Source: Octopus sinensis
Lineage: Eukaryota
Direction: 5' to 3'
DNA: 64,000 nucleotides
Assembly: GCF_006345805.1 (NCBI RefSeq)
Contig: NC_043019.1
Location: 4,277,360-4,341,359 of the forward strand
The translations under genes and the position numbers were made by a program. The first letter of the stretch is position 1, and each line of letters starts with the position of its first letter. Shown one piece after another: positions 17,541-63,034 of the stretch. The notes under the pieces were generated by a model that worked only from the letters and a program-made list of their open reading frames with translations, was not told where the DNA came from and did not search any database.

Positions 17541-17720
17541 ATGGCAACCCCGTATCGCCTAGAGGCCATTCATTCCTCAAGACAGCAACACGCTGGCAGG
17601 AACTTTATTGGACGACATGACGAGAGGGAAAAACTGAAAAACTTGATTAAGGATGAAAATACTCAAATAATACAAATCTTTGGCCTACCATATGTTGGTA
17701 AAACAAGTCTCATCAAAACT
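17541..17720 (+). CDS. Coding exon 1: ATG, FIGR motif and Walker A
   Basis: MATPY...[16 protein letters not shown]...[15 protein letters not shown]. Acceptor CCTTGCCTAG at 17471-17480 (exon starts 17481), donor GTAAGA at 17721, phase 0. Confidence 0.9.
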
Positions 17721-18125
17721 GTAAGAATTTTTCTTTAAGAATTTCATATATATATAAAAATACAGTGTACATTTAAACAGATAAGAGATGGCCATAATAG
17801 GACATCTGACTCGCTAGAAAGAGTACTGAAAAAAGTTGAAAATAAAATGGCCCAAAGTATCTTGTCCAACACTTCATAATTTTTGCTATAACACTGTCCA
17901 TTGATATACACATAGACAGAATTACAACTATTCGTGGTTAGTAGTTTAACTACTCTTTCTAGTGAGTCAGATGTCCTATTATGGCCATCTCTTATGTGTT
18001 TAAATATACACTGTATTTTTATATGAATAATATATAGTCTATTGACTAATTTTTCCTTCTTGCTAGACCACTGGTAGCAAAGAAGTTTTCTAAAAATTTT
18101 TTGCTACCCTAAGGTTTATTAATTA

Positions 18126-18194
<69 letters not shown>

Positions 18195-18459
18195 TATATA
18201 TTATATATATGTATATATATATGTATATATATATGTATATATATGTATATATATATGTATATATATGTATATATATAATATATTATATGTATATAATATG
18301 TTAATTATATATATATATATATATATGTATAATTATATGTATTATATAATATATATATTGTATATATATATATATATATTTATTATATATAATAAATGTA
18401 TATATAATATTATATAGTATATATATATATATATTATGTATATATATATATATATATAG

Positions 18460-18494
<35 letters not shown>

Positions 18495-18502
18495 TATGTA
18501 TC

Positions 18503-18534
<32 letters not shown>

Positions 18535-18589
18535 TATGTAATATATATATATATATGTATATATATAATATTATAGAGTATATATATAG

Positions 18590-18658
<69 letters not shown>

Positions 18659-19051
18659 ATAATATATATGTATATATATATATATATATGTATTATATAT
18701 ATATATATATGTATGTATATATATATATAATATATGTATATAATATATATATGTATATATATATGTTATATATATGTATATATTCTGTATATATATATGT
18801 ATATATTAATGTATATAATATATATATAGTAATTATATATGTATATATATATATGATATATATATATGTATATATATATGTATATATATATATTATGTAA
18901 TATATGTATATATATGTATATATATATATATATATGTATATATATGTATATAATATATATAACATGTATATATATGTATATATATATGTATATATAGTAT
19001 ATATATAATAATGTATATATAATGATATATATAATTACATGTATATATATG

Positions 19052-19085
<34 letters not shown>

Positions 19086-19359
19086 CATGTATATATATGT
19101 ATATATATATGACATGTAGATATATGTATATATATTATATATGTATATATATTATATATATATATATAATATATAATATTGTATTATATGTATATATATA
19201 TATATATTATATATATATGTATATATATATATACATGTATATATATGTATAATATATATAAATATATGTATATATATGTATATATATATATATTATATTA
19301 TATATATGTATATATATATATTATATATGTATTAGTATGTATATATGTATATATAATAT

Positions 19360-19391
<32 letters not shown>

Positions 19392-19458
19392 ATATATGTA
19401 TATATATATATATTGTATATATATATATATATATGTATAATATATATATAAATATATG

Positions 19459-19548
<90 letters not shown>

Positions 19549-19905
19549 ATATATGTATATGTATATATATGTATATGTATATATGTATATATATGTATAT
19601 GTAATATATATAATAATGTATATATATGTATATGTATATATGTATATATATGTATATGTATATATGTAATATATATGTATATATATGTATATATGTTATA
19701 TATAATGTATATGTATATATTATATATATATATATAGTATATGTTATGTATATATGTATAATATATTATATATGTATATATATTATATATATATATGTAT
19801 ATATATATTATATGTATATATATGTATATATATTATGTATATATATTGTATATAATATTATAGTATATATGTTATATATATGTATATATATATATATATG
19901 TAATA

Positions 19906-19962
<57 letters not shown>

Positions 19963-19967
19963 TAATG

Positions 19968-20006
<39 letters not shown>

Positions 20007-20045
20007 TAATCTATATATATAGTATATATATACTATATATATATG

Positions 20046-20077
<32 letters not shown>

Positions 20078-20123
20078 ATATATAGTATATTATATATATA
20101 TGTATATATATATATATATATGT

Positions 20124-20156
<33 letters not shown>

Positions 20157-20198
20157 GATATATATATGTATATATATATATATATGTATATATGTATA

Positions 20199-20234
<36 letters not shown>

Positions 20235-20989
20235 AGTATATATATATGTATTATATATATATATATTATATATATATATATTATGTATATATTATGTATA
20301 TAATATATATATATATATGTATATATATTATATATATATGTATATATATATATATTATTATATATTATATGTATATATATATATATAATATATGTTAATT
20401 ATATGTATATATATATATATATATGTATATGTATATATGTATATATGTATATATATAGATATATATATAATATATATATGTATATATATGTATATATATA
20501 TATATATATATATCATCATCATCATCATCATCATCATTTAGCGTCCGTTTTCCATGCTAGCATGGGTTGGACGGTTCAACTGGGGTCTGGGGAGCCCGAA
20601 GGCTGCACCAGGCCAGTCAGATCTGGCAGTGTTTCTACAGCTGGATGCCCTTCCTAACGCCAACCACTCCGAGAGTGTAGTGGGTGATTTTATGTGCCAC
20701 CGACACAGGTGCCAGACGAGGCTGGCGAACGGCCACGCTCGGATGGTGTTTTTATGTGCCACCGACACAGGTGCCAGACGAGGCTGGCGGACGGCCACGC
20801 TCGGATGGTGTTTTTATGTGCCCCCGACACAGGTGCCAGATGAGGCTGGCGGACGGCCACGATCGGATGGTGTTTGTTACGTCCCCAAAGCACGGAGGCC
20901 AGTCTATGCGGTATATATATGTATGTATATATATAGTCTATATGTATATATATGTATTATATGTATGTATATATATATATATATATATT

Positions 20990-21025
<36 letters not shown>

Positions 21026-23577
21026 TATATATATATATATATATATTATGTATATATATATATATATATATTTAATATTTATATATATGTATATACAGGG
21101 TTTGTTGAATAAATTGTCGTCTAAATTATGCAAAAATGAAAATAACACTGACATCTCATTTTAATAGATATATTTACCAAAATTGCATAAAAATATCTTG
21201 AAATACTAAAGAGTAAATTTATTCAGTAAAATCACCATTCGCTTTGACAGCCTCCAGATGATTTCAGAATCTCCTGCAACTCTTCTGGACAGTCTCCTTG
21301 TTTAAGTTGGTGAATCCTGCCATAATCCTTGCCTTTAGTTCATCTTTGGTGTTACAAGGAGTTTTGTCGGTCTCTCACTCAACTGTGCCCTACACATAAT
21401 AATCAAGGGTGTTGCAGTTTGAGTAGTTTGGTGGCCAGATGTTAGGGGTGATATGGTTGCAGAAATTGTCTGACAGCCATGACTGGGTTCTCCTGCTTGT
21501 GGGACATGGCGCAGAGTCCTGTTGCCAGACATAGGAACTTCCAGTAGCCACCCTCTTGACCCAGGGCAGCATTACTTCCTCCAGGAACTTGATGTGAGCC
21601 TCTTATCAATGAATGGAATATTTATCAGTTGTTTGGCAGAATGGACAAAGCAACAGTGAAATTAAATGGAGAGATAGGAAGATAACATTGTGTAACACGA
21701 TTTTTGTCCTTGGCGAGCAACTGTTATTCCCTATTTGCTGACCCCTAGAAAGTATGAAAAATGGCTACTATTTCCTTCAAACTTTGCTTTTGTTACATTT
21801 TGTCAGACCCTAAAGAATCCCTCTCAACACATGGCTATGATGCTACCCTGCTACTCCTCACATGCTCAAGTGGTTACGGTCAAGAAAATCCGTGATATTG
21901 AACAGAATATTTTCTATAATGATATTTCTGCTTCAGCAATTCAGTGCTGAATCTGTCTGAAATGTAATGGAAAATAGGTCAGTTTCAAAACAATGATGTC
22001 CATATGGCAAAAGGAAAGTATGAAGGGAATAGCAGTCATTTCCTTTGTTTTCTAGACAGAAGCAAATAGGAAATAACACTCTCTGATCAAAGACAAAAAA
22101 AAAAAAAATTTAATTTTGTTACGCAGTATAATTAGTGAAAGGGAATGAGACAAACTGAGAGACCGATAAATTGATAAGTGAATCTATGGAAATCTTTGAA
22201 CTTGTTCTAATGTTATGTTTCTAATATGTCAGGTCTGTCAAGAATTGAAGGATGAAATCAACCCCGAAAGACTCCACATAAAACACATCCATATTTCTAA
22301 TAATAGCAGTTGGTCTGATATTTCCAACATGCACAATACATTCACCAATTGTTCTAGTATCACCAATACGAAATGGAAAATTTGTATTTTTGATGATTTC
22401 CAGAACATTCAAGAAAGCTTCCTTCCAGGTTTCCAGGAGCTTTGCGACAATGACTTTCCACTGCACCCAAATCTAAAAATCATTCTCATATTAAGTGGTG
22501 GAAAACCATTTCAGTTTGATGGAATCAGGTTTGGAAAGTGTAAAGTGAGTCCATTGTCCATTAAAGACGGACAGCATCTTTTCTGCCGCTGTTCAAACAT
22601 TGAGAAAGATGATGATAATGAAGAGCAAATACACAACATCATCAGATATGCCTGTGGCCTGCCAGGACTTCTTATTTACTTTGCAGAAAAAATCTCCCAG
22701 TTTTATCATTTATCTTTTGATGATATCTACAAAATGATTTGTGATGAAACCAGCATCAATGATTTGCTGGACGAATGTACAATTAACAGACGTAATATTA
22801 AGCAAGAAATGGACAAGTATTTTTCTCAACTCTCTCAGAAACAGCAAGATGCTCTCAAAGTGCTTTCATATTTTCCTGGAAGATTTGGTATTGAGGAAGC
22901 TGTTGAAATGACTGATTCTTCTAGTCAACCAGCTTCCAAGATGCATGTTTTGATGCCACTTGTCGAACAAGGTTTGATCAATTCAGATTTAGAATTACAG
23001 AATTTCCAAGTACAAGAATTAATACGTGCAATTACTAAACAACAGATTGACAATGTACACAGCAATGATTTGGTAAAGCTCAAATATACAAACATTATTG
23101 GGAAAAGTCTGATGAAGGCTCAAGATATTTTTGATAAAGGTTTCATACATGAAGCACTCGGAATAATGAAGAACAACTGGGAAAATATTTCATTTATTTT
23201 GAAGAGAGGGATTGATGCACCCGCAGATGGAAGGACATATGGAGCTTATTATGAGGTAAGATTTTTTTTTTTAACAAATTTGTCTTTTATCCTTTTGGGG
23301 TCAAAAAATAAATACCAGATAAATACTATTCAATGCTGTTGGTCCTGATCTATCTTCTAAATTGGATGATTTGATATGGAATAACCCATATACATATATA
23401 TACATATACATAGGTGCAGGAGTGGCTGTGTGGTAAGTAGCTTGCTTACCAACCACATGGTTCTGGGTTCAGTCCCACTGCGTGGAATCTTGGGCAAGTG
23501 TCTTCTGCTATGGCCTCGGGTCGACCAATGCCTTGTGAGTGGATTTGGTAGACGGAAACTGAAAGAAGCCCGTCGTA

Positions 23578-23638
<61 letters not shown>

Positions 23639-26600
23639 GTATATGTTTGTGTGTCTGTGTTTGTCCCCCACCATCGCTTGACAACCGATGCTGGTGTGTT
23701 TATGTCCCTGTCACCTAGCGGGGTCTGATAAGCCATGGAGGCTGCCCCAGGCTTCAGTCCAATCTGACAGTGTTTCTACAGCTGGATGCCCTTCCTAACG
23801 CCAACCACTCCATGAGTGTAGTGGGTGTTTTTTTACGTGCCACCGGCACAGGGGCAACAGGTGGCTGGCAAACAGCCACAATCGATTGGTGCTTTTATGT
23901 GTCACCGACATGGCATCTGCCACGTTCGGACGGTGCTTTTTACGTGTCACCGGCACAGGTGTCATAAGAAAATAATCTGAATGGGAAAGGGTTAAGGGGT
24001 ATTAGTAAAAGAAAAGGGAGCAAAAGTTAAATAAAGTCTGAGAAACACAGAACCCTATCTATAAGCCACTGTGATACATGTGTTGTGCGCTATTGTTGTG
24101 TCCTAGTTGGTTCTCATTTCTTTTTGCCTTTCAGATAGCCACAAAAGCTTCACAAATACTTTGGTTATGTTACCCAGCAGAATCACAGGATTTTCTCTTG
24201 GCATGTCTACAAAATTCCATGTTATTTGGCAATGAAGAAGAGAAGGCATTGATGAATATAGCATATGGCATATCTTTGACAAATTTACCTGGTATGATAT
24301 ATTTATTAGTCTATGTCTTTATTTGTCTGTCTGCTGTTACTTTTACAAGGAATATATTGGTAGAAACTTGCAAGTTTTGACTTTCTTATCTTCATCAGAG
24401 TATGATTTACTTTGGTTCTTTTCAGCTTATATAGTCCCTGGCAACGTTTATTTTTCAGAGATAGGGCAATATCAATGCTAATTAGGTGTGGCATAGGTAT
24501 ACAGGGGAATTATGTGGGAAGTTTGGAGAATATAAGAAGATAGGAGAAAAGTATGTATTTATAGTGTGTGAATTTATAGAAAGGTATGGTGAGAAGATTT
24601 ATTTTGGTTTGATATAGGAATTTTGTTATTGTTTAGGCTTCAGTCAAGCATGGCAGTAAATGTTTTAAATAGATGTGTCAAATTCAGTTCATGACATTCT
24701 TTATAAATAAGGCATCGAATTTGAAATCCTGTCTGACCTATGCAAGCATGGAAAAGTGGATGGTGAATGATGAAGATGCTGATGATGAAAGAGGGTGTAT
24801 TTCAATGGATATATGGTAAAAAAAAGGGGCTAGAATTGTCTAAATTAGTGTTCATTAAATAGTAACTGTAGACATGATAATTCTACCATTGTTGTAGTGG
24901 AGGCGCAATGGCCCAGTGGTTAGGGCAGCGGACTCGCGGTCATAGGATCGCGGTTTCGATTCCCAGACCGGGCGTTGTGAGTGTTTATTGAGCGAAAACA
25001 CCTAAAAGCTCCACGAGGCTCCGGCAGGGGATGGTGGTGATCCCTGCTGTACTCTTTCACCACAACTTTCTCTCACTCTTACTTCCTGTTTCTGTTGTAC
25101 CTGTATTTCAAAGGGCCAGCCTTGTCACTCTTCGTGTCACGCTGAATATCCCCGAGAACTACGTTAAGGGTGCACGTGTCTGTGGAGTGCTCAGCCACTT
25201 ACACGTTAATTTCACGAGCAGGCTGTTCCGTTGATTCGGACCAACCGGAACCCTCATCATCGTAACCGACAGAGTGAGTGCTTCCACCACCATTGTTGTA
25301 ACTGTGACTATTTTTCTTGTGTTCTTTGCAGGTTTGGGAGGCTACATGGAAGCTATATCATACTATGAGAAGGCTATGAAGGTTTTGGAAACTAGAAACC
25401 TACAATATCGACAAATGCTGTTATACAATAGCATGGCTTACAACTACCATATGCAGGGCAAATATGTCGAATCCTTGAAGTAGGTTAAATCTTTGGTAAC
25501 CATATTTCTCATAAAATACAACCCCATGTGTTTTGTTGTGTCTTGGGAGGGTCATCAAGCCAATAATAACACACACACTGGTTTGATATTGATATCACTT
25601 CTTTATTATACATCAATTGGAAATTCAGCTGAGGTCTACTTTGCCTTTTATCCTTTAGGGGTTGATAAAATAAGTACCAGTCAAACACTGGGGTTGATGT
25701 AATCAATTTACCCCCTCCCCCCAAATTACTGGCCTTGTGCCAAAATTTAAAATCATTATTAGTCAATTGGTTAAGGCGGTAAGATGGCAGAATCATTAAC
25801 TTGTTGGAAAAAATGCTTAATGGCATTTCATCTGTCTTTGTGTTCTGAGCTCAAATTCTGTCATGGTTGACTTTGCCTTTAATCATTTAGGGGTTGATAA
25901 ATTAAGTACCAGTTGAGTACTGGGGTTGATGTAATTGACTATTCCTGTACCCCCTAATTTTAGGCCTTGTGCCTATAATCATCATCATCATCATCATTTA
26001 ACGTCTGCTTTCCATGCTAGCATGGGTTGGACGGTTCAACCGGGGCCTGGGAAGCCAGATGGCTGTACCAGGCTCCAATCTTGATCTGGCAGAGTTTCTG
26101 CAGCTGGATGCCCTTCCTAATGCAAACCACTCCGAGAATGTAGTGGGTGCTTTTTACATGCCAGAAAGGATTGTTAATCAACTGGTTAAACATTTAACCA
26201 ACCAACTAATTAATTAATTAATGGTTTGTTTAACGAGCAGGTTAAACAATCAGTTGGTTGTTTGTTAATCAAAGTTCTTTTGTTGATGTTTGTTACCTTT
26301 CCAGTGACTTCATGACTTCAGGTCTTGCTCCAAGCCATTTGTTCAGGTGAATTATGGAAAGAATCAAGAATTTGGAGGAATTTAGTGAAATAGGTTAACA
26401 TTTTCATGTTTATGCTTTCCTTTCATATTTATTCTAATACCATCATCATCATCATCATCATTTAACATCCGCTTTCCATGCTAGCATGGGTTGGACGGTT
26501 CGACCAGGGTCTGGGAAGTCCGAAGGCTGCACCAGGTCAGTCAGATCTGGCAGTGTTTCGACAGCTGGATGCTCTTCCTAACGCCAACCACTCCGTGAAT

Positions 26601-50479: not shown

Positions 50480-53400
50480 ATATATATATATGAATAATAT
50501 TAGGGTAATAAGAATTTAGGAATTATTATTACCAGTGGCCTAGCACAAAAAAATTAGTCAATAGACTATATATTATTCACATAAAAATATCGTGTACATT
50601 AAAACACATTAAGAGGCTTCCATCATAGGAAAGCCTTGTGCTAGAAAGAGCAGTAGAAAATTCAAACCACTAACTAGGGATAAATTCTTGAAAGGAATGA
50701 AAATTAAAAACGTTTACCATTTTTACTGCTCTTTCTAGCATAAGGCTTTCCTATTTGGAAACCTCTTAATGTATTTTAATGTACACGATATTTTTATGTA
50801 TATCCAAGGGATGCAGTATATATATATATATATGGATGTCAAGATGACCTGTACCCCACAGCAGAAGTGTTAAGACTGAAACTTCTGGTTGTGTAAAGCA
50901 CCCATATTGATGCCATGTAAAAGTACCCATGTGGCGACATGTAGAAGCACCTGTGTGGCGTCACAAAAAAGCCTCCATGCAGTGTCACATAGAAGTTCTT
51001 GTGTGGTGGCATGTAAAAATGCTCATGTGGTCCCATGTAAAAGGATCCTGCACACTTTGTAAAGTGGTTGGCATTAGGAAGGGCATCCAGCCACAGAAAC
51101 CATGCCGAATTAGACTAGGGTCTCGTACAGCTACCCAGCCTGCCAGCTCTGGTTGCATCATCCAACCTATGCCAGGAGAGACAATGGACGTAATATGGTG
51201 ATGATGATGATGATGGTAATGGAAATTTTTTTTTCTATTCTTTTTGTATTTTTTGACTTCAGTTTTAAATTTCTGATCCTGCCACATGTGTGAGGAGATA
51301 GTTACCTCCCTTTGCATTAACTGCCATCCAGAGGTCACCACATGTGTCTTCAGACATTTTTACCTGATATTTCCTTTTCTCTTTCCACAGAAGGCTCACA
51401 GAATGACGAAGCGTTCATTTTTTATAATGCTTCTCTAAGGGAAAGAATGAAAGTTGCTCCAATAAATCCCAGATTATCTGTCGTGGCGAATTGTAATGTG
51501 GCAAAATTAATGTCTCGTGATCGTGGAAACCATGGTAAGTATTCTTTTGTCAAGTTTTACTTCTAAAATCTATGAGGTGAGTGTTGAAATGTTCCTGGCT
51601 TTAACCCTTTAGTGTTTAAACCGGCCATATCCGGCCCAAATATTCTATATGTTTTATATTCAAACTGGCCATATCTAGCCCCTCACACCTAACCTACATT
51701 GACATTCTAAAACTAAGCAATCACATCATTGAAACTTCAAAGCTATAAGATAATGTATGATTAATTCAAAACAATTTGAGTAAAAAAAATATTACATTTA
51801 ACAGAGTAATCTGAACATTAAAGGGTTAAAGATATTGCAAAAGGCCTTGCATGTTGGATCAACTTTCTAAATTCTTTTACAGGGTTTAGAAAAAACTGAA
51901 GAACTGCTGCAATCATCGTCATCGTTTAACGTCTGCTTTCCATGTAGCATGGGTTGGACGGTTTAACTGTGGGCTGTTGAACCAGATGGCTGCACCAGGC
52001 TCCAGTCTTGATCTGGCAGAGTTTCTACAGCTGGATGCCCTTCCTAACGCCAAACACTCCGAGAGTGTAGTGGGTGCTTTTACATGTCACCGGCATGGGG
52101 CCCAGTCAAGCAGTACTGGCAGCGACCTCGCTCGAATTTTTTCCACATGCCAACAGCACAGGTGCCAGTAAGGTGATGCTGGTAACGATCCCACTCTAAA
52201 GGTGCCTCCTACATGGCACCGGCATGGAAGCCAGTTAGCTGCTCTAGCAACGATCATGCTCGGATGGTGCTCGTAGCACCCTACTAGCATGGGTCACAAG
52301 TGCCAGTAAGGTGAAGCTGGTAACGTTCTCACTCGAATGGTGCCTCCTACATGGCACCAGCACAGAAGCCAGTTAGCTGCTCTGGCAACGATCATGCTCA
52401 GATGGTGCTCTTAGCACCCTACTAGCATTGGGCACAAGTGCCAGTAAGGTGAAGCTGGTAACGATCACACTTGAACGGTGCCTTTTATGTGCCACTGGCA
52501 CAGAAGCCAGTTAGCTGCTCTGTCAACGATCATGCTTGTAGAGTGCTCGTGCCCGTCATCGAATTTCACTTTGACTTTGATTTCAATTTCACCTGCCTCA
52601 ACAATAAGGGTTTAAATCTGAGAGGGGAATATGTTGAATAAAATCATAATTAACTGATCCTCTTGTATTTTCTTTTACCAAAAGCCAGGATCTTTTCAGC
52701 ATTCTCTCGTACATATATAATCACTTGCTTTTTGAAGGGGTGCTGAAAAGTCCTTGGCAATAAGGATATTCAGAAAGGCCTGTTTGGAGGCCCAACTTCC
52801 TGAGTTCTTTTACAGGGGTTTGAAAAACTGAAGGGCTACTGCAATAAGTATGTGAATCTGAGAGGGGAATATGTTGGCTAAAATCATTATTTTCTGATCC
52901 TCCTGTATTTTCTTTTGCCCAAAAGCCTGGAACTTTTCAGCACCCTCCTCGAATTTTTAGTACAAGCCCACAGGCATTCAGTCTGCTAGAAATAACAGGA
53001 GAATCTCATTGAACTCATGCCTAGGAGCAAACATAATTGTGTAGTGCGTGGTTAAGAGATGTTTACTTCTCAATCATGTGGTTTTGGGGTCTATCTCACT
53101 TTGGGGTACTTTATACTGGATGGAAGCACTCCGTCGGGTACGACGATGAGGGTTCCGGTTGATCCGAATCAACGGAACAGCCTGCTCATGAAATTAACGT
53201 GTAAGTGGCTGAGCACTCATACACGCATACATACTTATTCACAGACCACACACACACCACATACAAGCCTGTATATGTATGTGCATATGTACATATATAC
53301 ACACACGCATGCAAGCATGCATATATATATGTATACATACATACATGTATATGCACATTGTGGCCTCAGAATCTCCTGCAACTCTTCTGGATGGTCTCCT

Positions 53401-54965
53401 TGTTTAACTTGGTGAATGCTGCCATAATCTTTGCCTTCAGTTCATCTTTGGCATTACAAGGAATTTTGTTTGTCTCTTGCTTAACTGTGCCCCACACATA
53501 ATAATCAAAGGGGTTGTAATCTGGGGAGCTATGTAGCCAGATGTTAGGGGTAGTGTGGTCGCAGAAATTGTCTGACAGCCATGGCAGGGTTCTCCTGCTT
53601 GTACGGCATGGTGCAGAGTCCTGTTGCCAGAAAACAAGGTCTTCCAGTAGTCACCCTCTTGACCCAGGGCAGCACTACCTCTTCCAGGAACTTGATGATG
53701 TAGGCCTCTCTGTTGAGTCAGAAGCTATGTGGGAAGATGAATGGAGGCACAACGTCAACATCGCTGGTGATCACTCTAAACACTATGATGTTGACTGGAT
53801 GTTTGATTATCGTAACCCTCGGTACATGTTTTGAGGAAATAGCAAGCCGATGGTTGTTCTGTCAGATGAGTGAAACAAGCAAATATTTAAAGAATATATG
53901 TAATATATACTCTTTTACTCTCTCTCTTTTACTCTTACTTGTTTCAGTCATTTGACTGCGGCCATGCTGGAGCACCGCCTTTAGTCGAGCAAATCGACCC
54001 TGGGACTTATTCTTTGTAAGCCCAATACTTATTCTATCGGTCTCTTTTTGCCGAACCGCTAAGTGACGGGGACGTAAACACACCAGCATCGGTTGTCAAG
54101 CGATGGTGGGGCGACAAACACAGACACACAAACATATACACACACATATATATATATATACATATATACGACAGGCTTCTTTCAGTTTCCGTCTACCAAA
54201 TCCACTCACAAGGCATTGGTCGGCCCGAGGCTATAGCAGAAGACACTTGCCTGATGCCACGCAGTGGGACTGAACCCGGAACCATGTGGTTGGTAAGCAA
54301 GCTACTTACCACGCAGCCACTCCTGCGCCTATATATATATATTATATGTGGAAGCACTTTTCTTAGTGGTTAGGCTGTCAGCATCATGATCGTAAGGTTG
54401 TGGTTTCGATGCTTGGACCGGGCGACACATTGTGTTCTTGAGCAAAACACTTCATTTCACATTGCTCCAGTTCACTCAGTTGGCAAAATATGAGTAACGC
54501 TGCAATGGACTGGCGTCCCTTCCAGCTGGGGAACACATACGCCATTGAAACCGGGAGACGGGGCTCATGAGCCTGGCTAGGCTTTAAATGGGCACATTTA
54601 TTTGTTTTATATATATATATAGTTGAAAAGGGGTTAAGAATTCATACAAATCAAAAGTTATAGTTAGAAAGTAAAGGGAGAAACAACAGATGAGTATCTT
54701 TCTTTTTCTCTTTTTTTTATTTGTTTCAGTCATTTGACTGCAGCCATGCTGGAGCACCACTCTTAGTCAGGGAAATCAAGACCATTACTTTTTCTTTGTA
54801 AGCCTAGTACTTATTCTATCGGTCTCTCTTGCCAAACTGCTAAGTGACGGGTACATAAACACACCAGCATCGGTTGTCAAGCGATGTTGGGGGGGGACAA
54901 ACACAGACACACAAACACACACACACACCATATATATATATTATATATATATATGTATATATATT

Positions 54966-55063
<98 letters not shown>

Positions 55064-56967
55064 ACATATATATATTATATATATATATATACATATATAT
55101 ATCTACATATACATATATATATATACATATATATATAATATATATATATATATATACATATATAATATATATATATATAATATATATATATACATATAAT
55201 ATAATATATATATATTATTATACATATATATATACATATATATATACATATATATATACATATATAATATATACATTATATATATATATATATATACCAT
55301 ATATATAGATATATATATATATATATATTACGACGGCCGTTTTTTTCAGTTTCCGTCTACACAAATCCACTCACAAGGCCTTGGTTGGCCCGAGGCTATA
55401 GTAGAAGACACTTGCCCAAGGTGCCACGCAGTGGGACTGAACCGGGAACCATGTGGTTGGTAAGCAAGCTACTTACCACACAGCCACTCCCGCGTCTTTT
55501 TATATATAAAAAATTTTGCTAATAATAATAAATCTCTGAGCGTGGTATAAATAGTAGCTGCAACTCATCGTGAAGTATATTTGCCATTTAAATATGGCTA
55601 ACCCGTAAGGGTGGATGCTACTGTAGCTTGTAGCCCCTGGAGGACACCTCCTCCTGCTGGCTATAGACACACTTTCTGGCCTATCAGTATTTGCAAAGGG
55701 AAGTCATCGTTCCTGTCTTCAACATATGATACACACTAATAATATTACCAAGTCAAAGATGCTATCCGTATATGCGTTTTTTCTCAGTCCGAACAGAAAG
55801 AACTATGGGTCAAGTTTCATATTGCGAACATGTATGCTCTTTTCATACAGCAAATCTAAGAAGATTTGCACAGGAGTGGCTATGTGGTAAGTAGCTTGCT
55901 AACCAACCACATGGTTCCGGGTTCAGTCCCGCTGTGTGGCATCTTGGGCAAGTGTCTTCTGCTATAGCCCCGGGCCGACCAATGCCTTGTGGGTGGATTT
56001 GGTAGACGGAAACTGAAAGAAGCTTGTCGTATATATGTATATATATATATATTGTGTGTGTGTGCGTGTGTGTGTTTGTGTGTCTGTGTTTGTCCCCCTA
56101 GCATTGCTTGACAACCGAAGCTGGTGTGTTTACGTCCCTGTCACTTAGCGGTTCGGCAAAAAGAGACCGATAGAATAAGTACCCGGCTTACAAAGAATAA
56201 GTCCTGGGGTCGATTAGCTCGACTAAAGGCGGTGCTCCAGCATGGCCGCAGTCAAATGACTGAAACAAGTAAAAGAGTAAAGAGTAAAGAGTAAGGCCTT
56301 TTTATTTTATCTATATTTTTTTTTTTGTTTGTCATTCTTATTTTCCTTCCAGAAACCGCACTGAGATTCCTCTCGAAATCGAAAGCCATTCTAAAGAAAC
56401 AAAGTTGGCACCATCTGATTACTTCTGAACTGTTGAACCAGACTGGTCAAGTGTATTTGAGGATGTAAGTACTCCTCATTTGGTCTGTCGTATTAGTGAA
56501 GTATCTTTATTTAGCCATTGGTCAAGTTATTTGAGAATTTGTTTTTATTTGACCAACTAAATTTTATGGTCAAGGTCAAAGTATTTGAAAATGTGGTGAT
56601 TGTATTGCTCAAATCCCATTTGAAAATGTAATTACCTTAATTAGGCCAACCACTCTAGTCAAGTGTGTTAGCTCCACTATTCTCGTAGCACCACCACCAC
56701 CACCACCACTACCATCACAACCACTACCATCACAACCACACATGACTATCACTGCTACTCACTCAATACCAGCAAACATTAAGTGCTACATGCTGTTGCT
56801 GCTGCTGCTACTATGTCTACTACTACTACTAGTAGTACACTATCACTACTGCTACTACTACTATTACTACTACTGCTGCAGCTGCTAGTACTACTAGTAT
56901 AATACCACTGCTGTTACTACTACTAGTACCACCAGCAGCAGCAGCAGCACTAGCGCCACCACCACTA

Positions 56968-57000
<33 letters not shown>

Positions 57001-57137: not shown

Positions 57138-57172
<35 letters not shown>

Positions 57173-58629
57173 AGCTGCTGCTAACAATATCAGTGCCAAA
57201 AAAGCTGACAGCGAGGTCTCACTGCACTTGCCTACAAAAAATAGCAGCCAAATCGCCTTCCAGACACATTTTTTATCATCACCATCATCACCATCATTAT
57301 CATTATCGTCATGATCATATCATTATCATCATCTTCATTGTCACATGCTATCACATACGCACGCACGCACACCTTCATTTTGGGATCACTACTACTTTAT
57401 TATCTCCCCTTCTTCCTAGCTCTCCTGTCTGACCACCTCCTTCTGGCCATTGCCATGATTGACCACTAGCTACTAAAGCTTTCTTTTTTTATTCTCCCTC
57501 TGTCTATTTCCTCGTGTTCCTTTCTGCTGAAGAGCGTAGGCTCAAAACATAAAAGACTTTCTCACCTTCCCGAGCGTTAAACTATTACACCTGCTTGTCG
57601 TTTACACACCTGTCTTCATCTTTTGCTTTTTGTAAATCTCAACTCAATATAGTTGTCACCATCACCAGCACTTATAACAACAGCAGCAGTACCACTGCTA
57701 CCACTACCACTATCACTGTTGACATCATCATCATCACCACCACCGCCACCATCACTATTACTACTATGACCATCAAAATCCCTACTATTACCTATTTCTT
57801 TACTACTCACAAGGGGCTACATCACCACAACTGCAATCACAACCACCACCACCACCGCCTCCACTACCATCTCTATCACCATCACCACAACTGCGACCAT
57901 GACCCCCACCCCCACCACCACTGCCTCTACTACCATCTCTATCACCATCACCACAACTGCAACCACGACGACAACGACCACCACCACCACTGCCTCCACT
58001 ACCATCTCTATCACCATCACCACAACTACCACCACCAAAACCACCACCACCACCACGACCACCAAAACCACCACCACTGCCTCCACTACCATCTCTATCA
58101 CCATCACCACAACTGCGACCATGACCACCACCACCACCACCACCACCACAACCACCACCACCGCCTCCACTACCATCTCTATCACCATCACCACAACTGC
58201 CACCACAGCGACCACCACCACCACCAACACCATCAACCCCCACCTCTATGCTCTGCTATTCATTAACCTTACCTTATCGTATTACAGGCATGACATGAGC
58301 AGTGCTCTACAAGCATTCCTGGAGTCGTTGTACATCTACAACAAGATCGATCCCAACAACAGTGCCAAAATCGAGGTTCTTAACATCGTTGCCCACTGCA
58401 GTCTTCTTCAAGAGTCATTCGATAATGCCAGGGAATATTTCCAGGATGTTCTGCAAGTCAACCCCAAAGCAACTATGAGCTGTGTCCTAGAAGTTGAAGG
58501 TTACGCAATAGCTATGGAACATCTTGTCTACCTTAGTTTTGAGAGTTGTGAGGTATGGAAAATCACTGGGCTTTGTTGTTTGTTGTTTGCTTCAATAGTT
58601 GTTGTAGTTGTTGTTGCTGATGATATCAC

Positions 58630-58669
<40 letters not shown>

Positions 58670-58860
58670 TCTTTTACTTGTTTCAGTCATTTGACTGCGG
58701 CCATGCTGGAGCACTGCCTTTAGTCGAGCAAATCGACCCCGGGACTTATTCTTTGTAAGCCCAGTACTTATTCTATCGGTCTCTTTTGCCGAACCGCTAA
58801 GTGACGGCGACTTAACACACCAGCATCGGTTGTCAAGCAATGCTAGGGGGACAAACACAA

Positions 58861-58897
<37 letters not shown>

Positions 58898-60519: not shown

Positions 60520-60554
<35 letters not shown>

Positions 60555-60993
60555 TCATGCAGACATGGCTGTGTGGTAAGAAGCTTGCTTTCTAACCCCA
60601 TGGTTCCAGGTTCAGTCCCACTTCTGGAACTTTGGGGAAAGTGTCATTTATTATAGCTGTGGGCTGACTAAAGCTTTGTGAGTGGATTTGGTAGATGGAA
60701 ACTGAAAGAAGCTCATTGGTGGTATGCATCTCTTAGATACCCTAAATTATAATTTTAATAATAATGATTACCTTTGAAGGTTTTTATTCCCATGCTAGCC
60801 ACCTGATAAGATTGGTATTTAAATAATGATCTTATCCTTATTTATATAAATTTATATATTTATTTTGTCATTATATTCACTGCGGTGGTATTTTGGCCAT
60901 ATCACATGAGGAGATTTAGGCGGGCAATTTAAACTGGTCATGTGCATACGTGCATATATATGTATGTATACATTCGTATATGTAAGTATATCG

Positions 60994-61031
<38 letters not shown>

Positions 61032-61290
61032 TATCTTTGTATTTATGTGCTATCTGAGTATATTCCACTGATGAAGGCAGAGCATTTCTTATGCAGAGCC
61101 AGAAATCCTGCGGCCTTAAGTCGAGCAAATCGACCCCAGGACTTATTCTCTGTAAGCCTAGTACTTATTCTATCGGTCTCTTTTGCTGAACCGCTAAGTT
61201 ACGGGGACGTAAACACGCCAGCATCGGTTGTCAAGCAATGTTGTGGGGGGGGGGACAAACACAGAAAACAAATACACACACACACACACA

Positions 61291-61340
<50 letters not shown>

Positions 61341-61512
61341 ATAATAATAATATTAGGGAGTAAATCCAAACTTACAGGGAAAAATTAGATTTAGGATTAA
61401 ATCTAATTTTACGGTATAAATATATATATATATATATTAAATTTATTTTGTTTCTATGTTTTTGTTTATGTTTTTCACTGTTTGATTTGCCTAATAGTGG
61501 TTTTATCTCTAA

Positions 61513-61554
<42 letters not shown>

Positions 61555-63034
61555 AAATGGAAAGATGAATTTTCTTGTTACAGATTATTCAAAAGTTTAA
61601 CCGATACCTGGGTAGCAAAAATCACAGCAGAAAAAAACACGGTTGGAGATAAGACCATTTGGTGTTGCAACCGTGCGTTGGTGCGGATAATTGAAGTTCA
61701 ATATAATTAGTGAATGGAAGAAATGGAGTTGAACGAAGATTGTACAGAATTCCTTTTATTACATTCTACTCATGTTTCAAAGGCCACAATTTTCCAAATT
61801 CTGATTAAATAAGGATACCATATTGCAGCTTTCTCTTCAGGAAAAACCAGGAATTACGTTGTCAGAACAAAACAAAACAGAGGCGCAGCAAAGCAATTCG
61901 AACGAGGACGCTCCTTAAGAGCACATGGGCAAACTGTTTATCAATGTACGTTGGTGGGGGCCGACAAAAGGTCCGTTGCAATAATTACAGGTCAGGCCGC
62001 GGTCAAATCTAGTAGGTGAGGAATTAATGAGAACAACGGGTGTGGAGATGTTCTGTGTGACCAAAACTAATGTTCTGAATATTTTAAGAATACAGGGTGT
62101 ATTTTTTAGGGGCGAGACAAAACCTACCTAAAAGCATGTATGTGTATACTAGCCTATGTGTGCGCGGCCGTATGTTGGCGGGGGGATCTAGATAATGAGC
62201 ACTGCTGAAAAAAGCCTGTCACGCGGCTGAAAAAATTCTGTGTTCGTGTGTTCGTCTGTGGCCTGCTTGTCTAAAAATTAACATCGTCAAAGAATCATAA
62301 GGGTATATATAATTCCAGCGTTTGCTTCTAAAAAAAACCGACCAATCTCCTAATGGGAGTAATTTCCCCTTGCAAGAGTTATTCATAGATTTTTTAAAAA
62401 GTTTTTTCAAAATTTATTTCCAAAAATTATTTTCATTTTAATATGGTAACAAGGTGTTAATTGTCTTAGGTATCATTTATATGTAAGATAAGTATGACGC
62501 CGCCAATGGGGACATCGAAAAGCCGTCATATATACGATGGGCTTCTTTCAGTTTCCGCCTACCAAATCCACTCACAAGGCTTTGGTCGACCCAAGGCTAT
62601 AGTAGAAGAATCCGGAACCATGTGGTTGGTGAGCAAGCTACTTACCACACAGCCACTCCTGCGCCTATGTTTGTTTATGAAATTTAATTCTTAATATTTT
62701 GTTTTTATTTTTCTAGGACCAGATGGCTGCTTTGGAGAATCTTCTAGAAGAATTACGTCAGATCAATAAACTTAGTGTTAATATGGAACAAAAAATGCAA
62801 TATTCAAGTGCCATTGCCAAGTACCAAGGACTGAAAATACATCTTCTTAAAAAATTCGACTACCGTAACAAAAGAACCGGCCTCCTTATAGATTCGCTTC
62901 CTGTAATTTGTGACATCTGCCAAGACTACAAACGTTATGTAAATTGCTCACAAGAGAATTATATTTTTAAGTTGTGTGGATTGAGATCACATATAAAGGA
63001 CTTTGATCTTCAAGAATTAAGTTTACAAAGTTAA
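17541..63034 (+). CDS. Spliced gene (10 coding exons, 855 aa): STAND/NB-ARC-like NTPase + winged helix + TPR-like repeats (NLR-like protein)
   Basis: Exons 17541-17720, 22233-23255, 24135-24291, 25332-25479, 42568-42677, 49443-49553, 51391-51534, 56353-56464, 58288-58552 and 62717-63034 join in frame. Intron phases are 0,0,1,2,1,1,1,2,0, all GT-AG, total 2568 nt. Motifs: FIGR, Walker A GLPYVGKT, Walker B ICIFDD, GLP (CGLPGLL), LSYFPGRF winged helix, then TPR-like helices. Confidence 0.88.
17750..18025. repeat. Fold-back element with ~75-bp arms (related design at 50580-50800)
   Basis: ATAAAAATACAGTGTACATTTAAAC...CTAGAAAGAGTA mirrored at 17950-18025. 50580-50800 starts ATAAAAATATCGTGTACATTAAAAC. 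Confidence 0.8.
18120..20515. repeat. 2.4-kb degenerate (AT)n/(ATGT) microsatellite field in coding intron 1
   Basis: Almost exclusively A/T with sporadic G; all ORFs here are Y/I/M/C artefacts. Confidence 0.95.
21096..21600 (-). mobile_element. maT-like (DD37D-type) Tc1/mariner transposase C-terminal remnant
   Basis: VWQQDSAPC...[16 protein letters not shown]; TA|CAGGG terminus at 21096. Confidence 0.78.
22233..23255 (+). CDS. Coding exon 2: rest of NTPase, helical domain and winged helix
   Basis: 341-codon stop-free stretch VCQELKDE...GAYYE containing [26 protein letters not shown] and [10 protein letters not shown] at 22231-22232, GTAAG at 23256. Confidence 0.93.
24135..24291 (+). CDS. 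Coding exon 3
   Basis: TTTTTGCCTTTCAG acceptor; [26 protein letters not shown]...ISLTNLP; donor GTATGA at 24292, phase 1. Confidence 0.88.
25332..25479 (+). CDS. Coding exon 4: TPR-like
   Basis: TTCTTTGCAG acceptor; [20 protein letters not shown]...[19 protein letters not shown]; donor GTAGGT at 25480, phase 2. Confidence 0.9.
28729..29920 (+). mobile_element. Non-autonomous Helitron with six tandem ~165-bp 5' units
   Basis: A|TC start, six repeats of TATAAACGGCAAAATGTCTG...CCCTGCAAAGCCATT (28740-29710), 3' hairpin and CTAG|T at 29917-29921. Confidence 0.72.
30360..31420 (-). mobile_element. RTE-tailed repeat with (GAT)n end and ~4 internal ~175-bp tandem units (family also at 20513-20905, 25978-26165, 26440-26815, 26975-27240, 33290-33540, 50830-51220, 51915-52570)
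   Basis: CATCATTTAACGTCC...GCTGGATGCCCTTCCTAACGCCAACC signature. Confidence 0.75.
32525..32775. repeat. (GAT/GAC)n trinucleotide microsatellite (similar tracts at 33790-34090, 34563-34830, 42240-42550, 56690-57180)
   Basis: Direct inspection; these produce the poly-D, poly-M and poly-T ORFs in the track. Confidence 0.95.
35784..36177 (+). mobile_element. Non-autonomous Helitron
   Basis: A|TCTTTATATATAAA start; CCCGAGCAACGCCGGG hairpin followed by CTAG|T. Confidence 0.8.
36178..41640. repeat. Tandem satellite, ~140-bp unit, about 38 copies
   Basis: Repeated AAATTTAAATGTTGAAACTGAATCTAACGG(T)nGTGTGTTCTTAAATGGCTTACAAACATCTTCCACACTGCAATTGTTTTCGTTCCAGCACACGATCTCAGATCAGGTCACTTGCTATGCGAGTACATCTCTGT. 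Confidence 0.97.
41790..42030 (-). mobile_element. CR1/Jockey-like LINE RT fragment
   Basis: LLTYVTHQ...KFDES and [18 protein letters not shown] resemble the RT segment WIxSFLSDRxIxVxVDG. Confidence 0.5.
42568..42677 (+). CDS. Coding exon 5: TPR-like (this frame is absent from the ORF track)
   Basis: TTTCTTCATCAG acceptor; (N)[36 protein letters not shown](G); donor GTAATA at 42678. The 110 nt bridge phase 2 to phase 1 exactly as the flanking exons require. Confidence 0.8.
42803..43401 (+). mobile_element. Second tRNA-derived SINE family as a tandem trimer (arrays also at 3575-4130, 7975-8580, 14015-14590 and 43930-44325, all on -)
   Basis: One head (AAGGCGGTGAGCTGGCAGAAACGTTAGC...GAGTTCAAATTCC), then ~180-bp GCCTTTCATCCTTTCGGGGTC body units; 15-bp TSD GGTAATACTAGTTGT at 42785-42799 and 43402-43416. 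Confidence 0.85.
45434..45654. mobile_element. Mariner-type MITE (related copies at ~46776-46966, ~52733-52950, and split at 51840-51910 / 52610-52710)
   Basis: Termini like GAGGGGTGCTGAAAAGT...ACTTTTCAGCACCCTC with a shared internal sequence. Confidence 0.65.
45865..45937 (-). ncRNA. Type I hammerhead with palindromic stem III and long stem II
   Basis: Minus strand ATGCAG-CTGATGA-[AGAT ATA TCAAATAT AC GCTT GCC AAGC ATATTTTGA AAA ATCC]-GAA-ACCGGT-A-CTGCAT. Stem I is 6 perfect bp. Confidence 0.82.
46070..46313. repeat. Fold-back member of the 60210-60519 family retaining only the 3' half of the hammerhead
   Basis: Perfect 40-bp arms 46162-46201 and 46274-46313; GAAAC GATT GT A at 46265-46276; shares TATAAGTTCAGCAAAA...ATCAAAATAAGCAAC with 60210-60335. 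Confidence 0.75.
48430..48475 (-). ncRNA. Minimal hammerhead, CpG-decayed, within a tRNA-headed element
   Basis: Minus strand GACAC-CTGATGA-A-GGCTG gagggtatat CAACT-GAA-AT GT-T-GTGTT. Confidence 0.6.
49149..49196 (+). ncRNA. Minimal hammerhead, 3' arm of stem I lost by a small deletion
   Basis: GACAC-CTGATGA-A-GGCTG gaaggtatat CAGCC-GAA-AC AT GT-T-AACAA. Confidence 0.6.
49443..49553 (+). CDS. Coding exon 6: TPR-like
   Basis: TTCTTTTTGCAG acceptor; [37 protein letters not shown]; donor GTGAGT at 49554. Confidence 0.9.
49617..49651 (+). ncRNA. 35-nt minimal hammerhead-like motif (U4C in core)
   Basis: GTTT-CCGAAGA-A-GAGC TCT GCTC-GAA-AT GT-A-AAAC. Confidence 0.62.
50016..50079 (-). ncRNA. 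Type I hammerhead, mirror copy in the left arm of an inverted repeat
   Basis: Minus strand CCATG-CTGACGA-GAATA...TGGTC-GAA-ACTG ATT CAGT-A-CATGG. Core intact; stem II base has one A-G mismatch. Confidence 0.75.
50231..50295 (+). ncRNA. Type I hammerhead ribozyme, intact core
   Basis: CCATG-CTGACGA-A-GACTA[CAGG TATCC TTAC GGATA ATAA]TAGTC-GAA-ACTG ATT CAGT-A-CATGG. Stem I 5 bp, stem II 5 bp plus extension, stem III 4 bp, GUA cleavage triplet (cut after 50290). Confidence 0.85.
51391..51534 (+). CDS. Coding exon 7: TPR-like
   Basis: CCTTTTCTCTTTCCACAG acceptor; (K)[20 protein letters not shown]...[13 protein letters not shown]; donor GTAAGT at 51535. Confidence 0.9.
51605..51825. mobile_element. 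piggyBac-type MITE
   Basis: TTAA|CCCTTTAGTGTT ... AACATTAAAGGG|TTAA. Confidence 0.8.
53366..53815 (-). mobile_element. Second maT-like transposase remnant
   Basis: High nucleotide similarity to 21260-21600. Confidence 0.75.
56353..56464 (+). CDS. Coding exon 8: TPR-like
   Basis: TTTTCCTTCCAG acceptor; (E)[36 protein letters not shown]; donor GTAAGT at 56465, phase 2. Confidence 0.9.
57520..57555 (+). ncRNA. Decayed minimal hammerhead of the same design as 49617
   Basis: CTTT-CTGCTGA-A-GAGC GTAG GCTC-AAA-AC AT-A-AAAG. A6C plus two CpG-type G-to-A changes. Confidence 0.5.
58288..58552 (+). CDS. Coding exon 9: TPR-like
   Basis: ATTACAG acceptor; (M)[22 protein letters not shown]...[13 protein letters not shown]...FESCE; donor GTATGG at 58553, phase 0. 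Confidence 0.88.
59150..59605. repeat. Fold-back element with ~115-bp arms
   Basis: TTAATTATAATAAAGGGTTAA...CTACTAGTAAAAAAG mirrored at 59485-59605. Confidence 0.8.
59713..59800 (+). ncRNA. Type I hammerhead with long stem II; 3' arm of stem I clipped by a SINE insertion
   Basis: AATTGG-CTGATGA-GTGCTCAGCATTTTA..TGTTGTAA TAC TTACAACA..TAAAATGATGTAGTAC-GAA-ACGATCGT-A-CCAG. GUA triplet, cut after 59796. Confidence 0.8.
60347..60437 (-). ncRNA. Type I hammerhead, intact inverted partner of 59713-59800
   Basis: Minus strand AATTGG-CTGATGA-GTGC...GTAC-GAA-ACGATCGT-A-CCAAATT. Confidence 0.82.
61068..61106 (+). ncRNA. 3'-truncated hammerhead remnant
   Basis: CTGATGA-A-GGC ag a GCAT ttctt ATGC aga GCC-a-GAAAT, followed by a SINE junction; no cleavage triplet or stem I. 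Confidence 0.35.
61764..61843 (-). ncRNA. Type I hammerhead, near intact
   Basis: Minus strand TTC-CTGAAGA-GAAAGCTGCAAT...ATTGTGGCCTTT-GAA-AC ATGA GT-A-GAA. Stem II pairs at 11 of 12 positions counting G-U; stem I is only 3 bp. Confidence 0.7.
62717..63034 (+). CDS. Coding exon 10 (terminal)
   Basis: TTTATTTTTCTAG acceptor; [15 protein letters not shown]...CDIC...LSLQS then TAA. Confidence 0.88.
   Translation, partial: DQMAALENLLEELRQINKLSVNMEQKMQYSSAIAKYQGLKIHLLKKFDYRNKRTGLLIDSLPVICDICQDYKRYVNCSQENYIFKLCGLRSHIKDFDLQELSLQS

Follow-up and report, generated by a model that had tools for sequence, protein, structure and literature searches.

A predicted NB-ARC-like STAND protein with a tetratricopeptide repeat sensor and no N-terminal effector domain, encoded in a tandem gene cluster of Octopus sinensis

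How would a receptor-like NTPase relay a signal if its own chain holds no effector domain? This question is raised by a locus at positions 17541 to 63034 (plus strand) of a 64,000-nucleotide stretch of the Octopus sinensis genome, hereafter the window (RefSeq assembly GCF_006345805.1, contig NC_043019.1, positions 4,277,360 to 4,341,359 of the forward strand). An earlier note, made from the letters of the window alone, had read the locus as an NLR-like STAND protein with tetratricopeptide repeats (TPR) and no N-terminal effector, and had left room for an undetected upstream coding exon. Here we report that the locus is an intact gene and that its product is, with high confidence, a STAND protein of the NB-ARC/AP-ATPase clade with a TPR sensor, as judged from sequence comparison and structure prediction. 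The gene is already present in RefSeq as an uncharacterised protein; what is added here is the class assignment, a firm N-terminus, the structure of the cluster in which the gene lies, gene conversion of its second exon and a conserved motif in its tail.

The gene was built by three-frame reading of candidate regions, followed by phase bookkeeping and then by comparison with octopod homologues. An eight-exon draft (777 amino acids, aa) was rejected on account of two phase mismatches; because the splice phases did not match without them, two small exons were sought, and the homologues supplied them (exons 5 and 8, Table 1). The resulting model has 10 exons, GT-AG introns throughout and consistent splice phases, with a coding sequence of 2568 nucleotides (nt) that specifies 855 aa and ends in a TAA stop at 63032-63034. 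When 16 octopod homologues were used as tblastn queries, identical exons were marked and a single gene copy was found in the window. The product is identical at 855 of 855 residues to XP_029650059.1 / XP_036368277.1, 'uncharacterized protein LOC115223562' of O. sinensis RefSeq, at genomic locus CM016881.1:4294900-4340393 of GCA_006345805.1; the product length given in the earlier note is thus confirmed, and its attribution to a probable cephalopod was right. Compared with the O. bimaculoides orthologue (LOC106874622, ~91% aa identity), the ratio of nonsynonymous to synonymous substitution rates (dN/dS, pairwise) was 0.21-0.25 in both halves of the gene, which indicates purifying selection. The gene is therefore real and intact, and more than a chance reading frame.

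The encoded protein begins with about 21 disordered residues, followed by a nucleotide-binding domain (NBD), a helical domain, a winged-helix domain (WHD), an arm, the TPR region and a short Cys-containing tail. An AlphaFold model computed from the wider family alignment (mean predicted local distance difference test score, pLDDT, 85.2; predicted template-modelling score, pTM, 0.75) displayed a five-stranded parallel NBD sheet, the helical domain, a WHD with a β-hairpin and then ~430 residues of paired helices, with helical repeats over aa 339-770. This is the domain order that had been proposed from the letters alone. The repeats were recognized by Pfam as TPR_12 (60.5 bits, cut-off 30.1), with TPR_1 and TPR_2 also above their cut-offs. 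All octopod members retain the Walker A (GLPYVGKTS) and Walker B (ICIFDD) motifs, and P204 was the sole invariant column in an alignment of 26 relatives. Since Walker A, Walker B (DD) and GxP are intact, nucleotide binding is expected.

To which class does this architecture belong? STAND proteins are reportedly defined, after Leipe and colleagues in 2004, by a P-loop NBD, a helical domain with GxP, a STAND-specific WHD, a repeat sensor and nucleotide-dependent oligomerisation. Walker A and B motifs, a GxP-bearing helical domain with a WHD, and a C-terminal repeat sensor were all found in the octopus protein, both in its sequence and in its AlphaFold model. A phmmer search with aa 1-401 against 1.84 billion representatives returned 54 matches at E<=1e-3 (homologues are designated here by P numbers), including Glandiceps P0023 (2e-15), Saccostrea P0027 (3.7e-9, aa 22-357), Pecten P0028 (1.5e-8) and the bacterial proteins P0044, P0054, P0045 and P0061. 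In Pfam, sub-threshold matches of the octopus protein to ATPase_2 (23.9 bits, cut-off 33.2) and AAA_16 (19.7 bits, cut-off 32.6) covered the first 70-100 residues only and, together with a partial NB-ARC hit, fell on aa 21-102. The Pfam NB-ARC gathering score is passed by the homologues P0027, P0023, P0026, P0044, P0045 and P0054 (P0027 passes AAA_16 and nSTAND6 as well); because these homologues pass the threshold and the window protein does not, the link to Pfam NB-ARC is transitive. When a profile of the 26-member family was compared with the PDB, it matched PH0952 (6mfv, 1.5e-20), AfsR (8k60, 5.5e-15) and the NB-ARC domains of the plant NLRs NRG1, MLA13, ADR2, Sr35 and NRC1. Foldseek likewise placed PH0952 at the top (6mfv_A, E 5e-9, 774 columns at ~12% identity), followed by SAMD9, the Apaf-1 apoptosome, CED-4, ZAR1, NRC3 and Avs3; the match to the CED-4 fold had a template-modelling (TM) score of 0.65 on the target and a root-mean-square deviation of 4.1-4.3 over ~350 columns. 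Taken together, phmmer, the family profile, AlphaFold, Foldseek and the Pfam TPR matches agree on the STAND-TPR assignment that the earlier note had made. A non-STAND housekeeping ATPase, which that note had proposed to look for by profile and structure, is not what was found, with PH0952, Apaf-1, CED-4 and ZAR1 as the nearest folds.

Four more specific identities were tried and rejected. An ORC/Cdc6-type AAA+ protein gave a fold TM score of 0.35 with no match over WHD, arm and TPR. Orthology to NPHP3 was dismissed, as NPHP3_N scored 13.6 bits against a cut-off of 24.8 and TPR_NPHP3 was not reported. A canonical NLR with NACHT and leucine-rich repeats (LRR) was set aside on finding neither domain in Pfam at E<=1, so that the label 'NLR-like' stands in a loose sense and fails in its strict one; by fold and by profile the neighbours fall in the AP-ATPase/PH0952 group. 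An anti-phage STAND of the Avs type was rejected because PADLOC returned no Avs match but only weak ones, to the candidate families PDC-S27 and PDC-S01, in the P-loop region, and because Avs3 is a fold neighbour of a generic kind; no informative family for the window protein was present in PADLOC or NCBIfam.

Is the short N-terminus a property of the gene or of its annotation? The ATG at 17541 lies 21 residues before the FIGR motif, where about 20 had been counted earlier, and the frame upstream of it is open for exactly the 20 codons, back to 17481, that had given rise to the suspicion of a further exon. These codons are preceded by a TAG at 17478-17480, within a pyrimidine-rich, acceptor-like 'cctag' (17476-17480), and are most likely 5' untranslated region (UTR) of the exon in which coding begins. 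An in-frame TAA stands 4 codons before the shared MATPYRL ATG of paralogues LOC115223560 and LOC118767588, in the homologous exon segment behind a conserved polypyrimidine-AG acceptor; the corresponding frame of the window gene is fortuitously open because an 8-nt indel removed the TAA that these paralogues keep. The MATPYRL start is common to all full-length O. sinensis paralogue models listed and to P0004 and P0007 of O. vulgaris, the start of LOC115223562 is the same under its two RefSeq accessions, and both Argonauta models begin at the aligned position, one with just 6 residues before FFLGRH. For a distant relative, P0019, transcripts assembled in Logan (SRR29271470/84) carry a 596-nt 5' UTR interrupted by stop codons in each of the three frames, and encode 40 residues before the LIGR motif. 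Plus-strand open reading frames (ORFs) of at least 36 aa in 7387-17540, concatenated after removal of duplicate repeat ORFs and with 1-7386 left out, contained no Pfam domain at E<=0.1. Pfam also reported no domain in aa 1-20 of the protein, residues that AlphaFold modelled with low confidence (Table 1), in agreement with the earlier statement that a death-fold, TIR or HeLo-like N-terminal domain is absent. A tripartite effector-NOD-repeat arrangement, where NOD denotes the nucleotide-binding oligomerisation module, was thus not found: 21 disordered residues precede the NOD, and no Pfam domain follows at the C-terminus either. By these lines of evidence the short N-terminus is real, and the protein is predicted to have no folded N-terminal domain. 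A fungal-type N-terminal amyloid signalling motif is unsupported, since neither the length (6-40 aa) nor the sequence of the N-terminal peptide is constant, even between Octopus and Argonauta.

It is very improbable, in our estimate, that a hidden upstream exon supplies an N-terminal effector and that the effector-less appearance is an annotation artefact. The window gene alone has a frame open for 20 codons to an acceptor-like AG at 17480, and LOC115223561 has an acceptor 1 nt ahead of its ATG; against these stand the in-frame TAA of the two paralogues, the uniform RefSeq and Argonauta starts, the blank Pfam scan of the upstream ORFs, the stop-filled 5' UTR of P0019 and the equally short relatives in other molluscs. 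One O. vulgaris model, P0006, does carry an N-terminal extension of 94 aa, but this is a Ty3-like reverse transcriptase/RNase H fragment (4ol8_A, E 4e-11). In this model, named after LOC115227430, residues 1-94 are fused in frame to the MATPYRL start, and the model probably owes its chimeric form to annotation across a retrotransposon insertion. The paralogue TAA, the shared starts and the upstream scan thus largely remove the earlier concern over a missed coding exon.

The layout extends well beyond octopods. Relatives were found in the bivalves Saccostrea, Pecten, Solemya, Potamilus, Mercenaria ('nephrocystin-3-like'), Pinctada ('NB-ARC domain-containing protein') and Mya, in the gastropods Haliotis and Batillaria, in the hemichordate Glandiceps and in the coral Porites. 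In nearly all of these, 3-20 residues precede the FxGR motif (Potamilus P0026 is longer), most of the aligned relatives having it within ~40 aa of the N-terminus, and long N-terminal extensions among the examined matches were of the prokaryotic type only (BTAD/SARP, kinase, cyclase, LuxR/GerE). Because bivalve, gastropod and hemichordate relatives also have no N-terminal domain, the effector-less NB-ARC-like-TPR layout is, as far as the sequences indicate, the norm of this invertebrate family and not an octopus peculiarity; its implied unusualness had been overstated. The mollusc and hemichordate proteins (Saccostrea XP_061176032.1, Pecten XP_033732421.1 and others) are true homologues across the whole NOD (E 2e-15 to 1e-4), with the same NOD-TPR layout, an NTPase that starts within ~20 aa and, in some, a shared CxxC...C motif. 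They differ from the octopus protein in that identity is 19-26% (P0019 reaches 28% over the NOD) and in that several keep the MHD His (IHD, MHS; P0027, P0023 and P0038) and the sensor-1 Arg (P0023, P0069 and P0037). By contrast, the acidic Walker B pair, DD in octopods, is lost in P0019, P0028, P0024, P0058 and Batillaria P0037 (…TK…, …KD…, …RL…), with Pecten, Solemya and Haliotis among the degenerate cases. Some members of the mollusc family may, in consequence, bind nucleotide and yet be unable to hydrolyse it. A word-indexed homologue search, profile included, found nothing beyond octopods; P0019 as query added one relative.

The tail of the protein holds the only conserved feature outside the NOD and the TPR, which makes it the foremost candidate for a site of output or partner binding. 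Its cysteines are spaced C815-x2-C818-x8-C827-x9-C837 and coincide with a small helical element (aa 816-836) modelled by AlphaFold with a pLDDT of ~80-87. C815 and C818 are invariant in octopods, and an hCxxC-x8-13-C pattern also occurs in P0019, Pecten P0028, Solemya P0024 and Haliotis P0058. The CxxC...C tail may be a small metal-binding (possibly Zn) or docking element, and its conservation lends modest support to the alternative, raised earlier, that the protein signals through its C-terminus.

At least five paralogues form a tandem cluster on CM016881.1 (Table 1), and of those examined the window gene comes last; the cluster also contains fragments of 120, 164 and 565-601 aa; no other called gene lies within 10 kb on either side of LOC115223562. 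Copies are present in O. vulgaris and Argonauta hians as well, and no mention of the LOC identifiers of the cluster genes was found in the literature. Compared with three O. sinensis paralogues (pairwise, Nei-Gojobori), exon 2 had a synonymous divergence (dS) of 0.125-0.137, whereas for every other exon, exon 1 included, dS ranged from 0.57 to >2.6; dN/dS was 0.15-0.45 throughout. The region of 92-94% nt identity extends past exon 2 to take in 96 nt of intron 1 and 14-36 nt of intron 2, exon 3 shows nt identity of only 75-78%, and the sensor exons show 45-65% aa identity with dS >1 among paralogues. The homogenisation extends to synonymous and intronic sites, so that conversion, and not selection alone, accounts for this pattern. 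On these comparisons, exon 2, which encodes most of the NOD, has been homogenised among the cluster paralogues by gene conversion, and the divergence of the TPR exons is ancient.

Two peculiarities of the cluster models are recorded here. The minus-strand annotation of LOC115223659 (601 aa, with a faint ATPase_2 match) spans the whole range of LOC118767588 (L007, CM016881.1:4034748-4096902), which suggests nested, antisense or mis-joined models. The O. bimaculoides orthologue model begins inside exon 2 (L001, CM046623.1:24117880-24157620); colinearity of L001 with the window ends at an assembly gap (8872-8971), ~930 nt upstream of exon 2, and beyond the gap lies a head-to-head, TPR-only paralogue fragment at 547-5468 on the minus strand. 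Because the colinear alignment stops at the gap, the missing exon 1 of this orthologue is uninformative.

The explanation that we favour overall, and that we hold to be somewhat on the probable side, is a cytosolic STAND switch with a TPR sensor and no built-in effector. If the protein works like PH0952/MalT, Apaf-1 and plant NLRs, contacts of the arm and TPR would hold the NOD closed around ADP in the resting state. A ligand on the TPR would release the arm, ADP would be exchanged for ATP, and the NOD would oligomerise. No death-fold, TIR, kinase or DNA-binding output is built into the chain, and the oligomer would therefore have to pass its signal to another protein that it recruits, with the C-terminal CxxC...C module, possibly Zn-binding, as a candidate docking or output element. 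We judge this coupling of a switch to a separate partner, which the earlier note had put forward as a sensor-only receptor, to be a little more likely than not. Hydrolysis and resetting may be atypical, as the protein lacks the sensor-1 Arg and has Gln in place of the MHD His. An immune role is a substantial possibility that falls short of being probable, with innate surveillance as the most plausible setting, and a tandem expansion that sets old TPR exons on a homogenised NOD exon would fit receptors of differing specificity.

Comparison with known systems places the proposed switch in context. The closest in domain order are PH0952 of Pyrococcus horikoshii and MalT of E. coli, with NBD, helical domain and WHD followed by arm and TPR; PH0952 is the best PDB match by both profile and fold. 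For this class a mechanism of autoinhibition by arm and TPR has been worked out, and both proteins are transcription factors, PH0952 with an N-terminal ArsR-like and MalT with a C-terminal LuxR-type DNA-binding domain (PMC6468293). The octopus protein carries neither. Among animals, Hydra and Acropora have long been known to possess 'NLR-like' proteins of the NACHT/NB-ARC-TPR kind, with 103 of the TPR type in H. viridissima (PMC7642931). Like the octopod family, these are STAND NTPases with TPR in place of LRR sensors and lineage-specific expansions; unlike it, they are described as tripartite, many with Death, DED or TIR N-termini, whereas the octopod family has none. The NOD fold, Walker A, Walker B, GxP and WHD are shared with Apaf-1 and CED-4. 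Both of the latter have an N-terminal CARD, and the sensors of Apaf-1 are WD40 repeats; the octopus protein differs from them in having no CARD, a TPR sensor, no sensor-1 Arg and Gln for the MHD His. Bacterial STANDs of the AfsR/SARP and Avs types also combine an NB-ARC NOD with TPR (AfsR was matched by profile, Avs3 by fold, and BTAD-, kinase- and cyclase-NB-ARC-TPR proteins of bacteria were among the direct phmmer matches), but all have an N-terminal effector, be it BTAD/SARP DNA-binding, Ser/Thr kinase, cyclase or nuclease. Plant sensor NLRs that use NRC, ADR1 or NRG1 helpers, whose NB-ARC fold is related (NRC3 and ZAR1 were fold matches), offer a functional analogy only: their N-terminus is non-executing and a separate partner acts for them, but they retain a (degenerate) coiled-coil or TIR domain and use LRRs.

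Several observations weigh against the switch as proposed or against its class assignment, which itself rests on transitive homology and predicted structure. The window protein does not pass Pfam NB-ARC (PF00931; 21.8-22.2 bits against a threshold of 23.5, aa 32-102 only), a single-sequence phmmer search of the PDB with the NOD found no STAND protein, and an octopod-only profile matched TPR proteins alone in the PDB, STAND matches having come only with the wider 26-member alignment (A3). The sensor-1 Arg (RNBS-B 'TTR') is absent and the MHD His is changed to Gln (VQE) in octopods, and with these residues lost ATPase cycling could be impaired. No effector-domain partner gene was found within 10 kb of the four cluster genes examined, and pairwise dN/dS gave no gene-wide sign of positive selection on the TPR. 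In the tail, both Argonauta models have lost the third Cys and one the fourth, and the C-terminal 105 aa contain no Pfam domain.

A non-immune STAND-TPR scaffold or regulator (cytoskeletal, ciliary or neuronal, in the manner of nephrocystin-3 or TANC), with an NTPase that gates complex assembly through repeats of the kinesin light chain (KLC) type, is rather unlikely. The TPRs are indeed of this type (TPR_12 scores 60 bits, and among PDB sequences KLC1/2 match best), the Mercenaria relative has been auto-named nephrocystin-3-like, and every pairwise dN/dS is well under 1; yet the NPHP3_N score is far below its cut-off and TPR_NPHP3 is without a match, the nearest folds of the NOD are apoptosome, resistosome and PH0952-type switches, and a lineage-specific tandem expansion with strongly diverged sensor exons would be uncommon in a housekeeping scaffold. 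A regulatory or decoy member that co-oligomerises with other STAND receptors, either as a dominant negative or as a sensor for a helper, and does no signalling of its own is distinctly unlikely. Such a role would suit a chain that has no output domain, and conversion of exon 2, the oligomerisation module, with sensors that differ, would keep the NODs mutually compatible; conversion of a single large exon may, however, be a mechanical by-product, the full-length cluster paralogues read all lack an effector domain, and a helper is not evident in the cluster. That the gene is a duplicate in decay or without function, set within repeat-rich DNA, is scarcely credible: the very long, repeat-filled introns (with a 5.4-kb satellite and a 2.4-kb AT microsatellite), the cluster fragments and the O. 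bimaculoides model without exon 1 would suit it, but the 855-aa ORF is intact with canonical splice sites and conserved catalytic motifs, dN/dS against the orthologue is low, and the loss of exon 1 in O. bimaculoides coincides with an assembly gap. The effector-less switch with a separate partner thus remains the reading that we prefer.

To our knowledge, cephalopods are rarely credited with NLR-type cytosolic receptors. A family of this kind would be missed by domain-based immune-gene surveys, as it lies below the Pfam NB-ARC cut-off and gives no NACHT match. The octopod tandem cluster of constrained NB-ARC-like-TPR switches thus offers comparative immunologists a concrete candidate family, as well as a ready case in which to study how signals leave a STAND that has no effector, and the combination of a converted NOD exon with old sensor exons is an instance of concerted evolution confined to one module. 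The gene itself belongs, still uncharacterised, to a protein class that is already known. An extension of the preferred switch that we consider decidedly improbable is that paralogues with diverged TPRs, sharing a converted NOD, co-assemble as mixed oligomers with output via the C-terminal CxxC...C; if true, this would be a C-terminal-output, hetero-oligomeric, NLR-like immune system, undescribed in animals and invisible to domain-based censuses of cephalopod NLRs.

Table 1. Coordinates of the gene, its product and its cluster. Positions are those of the window, except for the last four rows, which refer to CM016881.1.
Feature	Position	Strand	Residues, content and source
Open-frame stretch upstream of start	17481-17540	+	20 codons, ITTYRNTERQRKVKYIQVID; window sequence
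Exon 1	17541-17720	+	aa 1-60; donor gtaaga; N-terminal peptide, FIGR, Walker A
Disordered N-terminal peptide	17541-17603	+	aa 1-21; AlphaFold pLDDT 35-42 for aa 1-20
FIGR motif	17604-17615	+	F22-I23-G24-R25
Walker A	17682-17708	+	GLPYVGKTS, aa 48-56
Gene-conversion tract	22137 to 23269-23291	+	92-94% nt identity to cluster paralogues; blastn vs L005-L007
Exon 2	22233-23255	+	aa 61-401; remainder of NBD, helical domain, WHD, arm start
Walker B	22380-22397	+	ICIFDD, aa 110-115
Sensor-1 position	22485-22508	+	LILSGGKP, without Arg
GxP motif	22653-22673	+	CGLPGLL, aa 201-207
WHD	22797-23045	+	aa 249-331; β-hairpin 309-320 in AlphaFold model
MHD equivalent	23004-23021	+	FQVQEL; Gln replaces the His of relatives
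Exon 3	24135-24291	+	aa 402-454; arm / first TPR-like helices; tblastn and AlphaFold
Exon 4	25332-25479	+	aa 454-503; TPR; tblastn
Exon 5	42568-42677	+	aa 503-540; TPR; located via homologues
Exon 6	49443-49553	+	aa 540-577; TPR; tblastn
Exon 7	51391-51534	+	aa 577-625; TPR; tblastn
Exon 8	56353-56464	+	aa 625-662; TPR; located via homologues
Exon 9	58288-58552	+	aa 662-750; TPR; Pfam TPR_12, TPR_1, TPR_2 above cut-offs
Exon 10	62717-63034	+	aa 751-855 and TAA; long helix, Cys motif, disordered end
Long helix	62783-62860	+	aa 773-798; AlphaFold
Cys motif	62900-62986	+	aa 812-840; C815, C818, C827, C837
LOC115223655	end near 4.035 Mb		
LOC118767588	4.045-4.087 Mb	+	
LOC115223560	4.124-4.148 Mb	-	
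LOC115223561	4.219-4.260 Mb	+	

The introns and flanks of the gene are rich in repeats. Intron 4 contains, at 36245-41640, a 5.4-kb satellite of ~38 copies of a 141-bp unit (95% matches) with many spurious ORFs, and (AT)n/(TA)n microsatellites at 18126-20513 (intron 1; 2.4 kb, guanine-cytosine content ~8%) and 54930-55328 (0.4 kb) give rise to YIYIYI pseudo-ORFs. An element of ~160-184 bp, in short tandem triplets, was observed at 3711-4029, 7980-8530, 14016-14552, 42853-43405 (in opposite orientation) and 43952-44276; it flanks the gene and lies inside it, has many copies in L001 of O. bimaculoides, and is probably a short interspersed element (SINE)-like or satellite repeat family of the octopus genome. 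Short minus-strand ORFs at 21390-21572 and 53544-53675, for which Pfam was blank at E<=0.01, may encode a C-terminal piece of a mariner/Tc1-type transposase. Long ORFs rich in Asp, Met/Thr, Ile/Val or His at 32468-32927, 33656-34144, 34511-34918, 42278-42832 and 57595-58723 are intronic, non-coding simple repeats of the trinucleotide type (GAT/ATG/ACC-like), one of which enters the ORF of exon 9 in frame.

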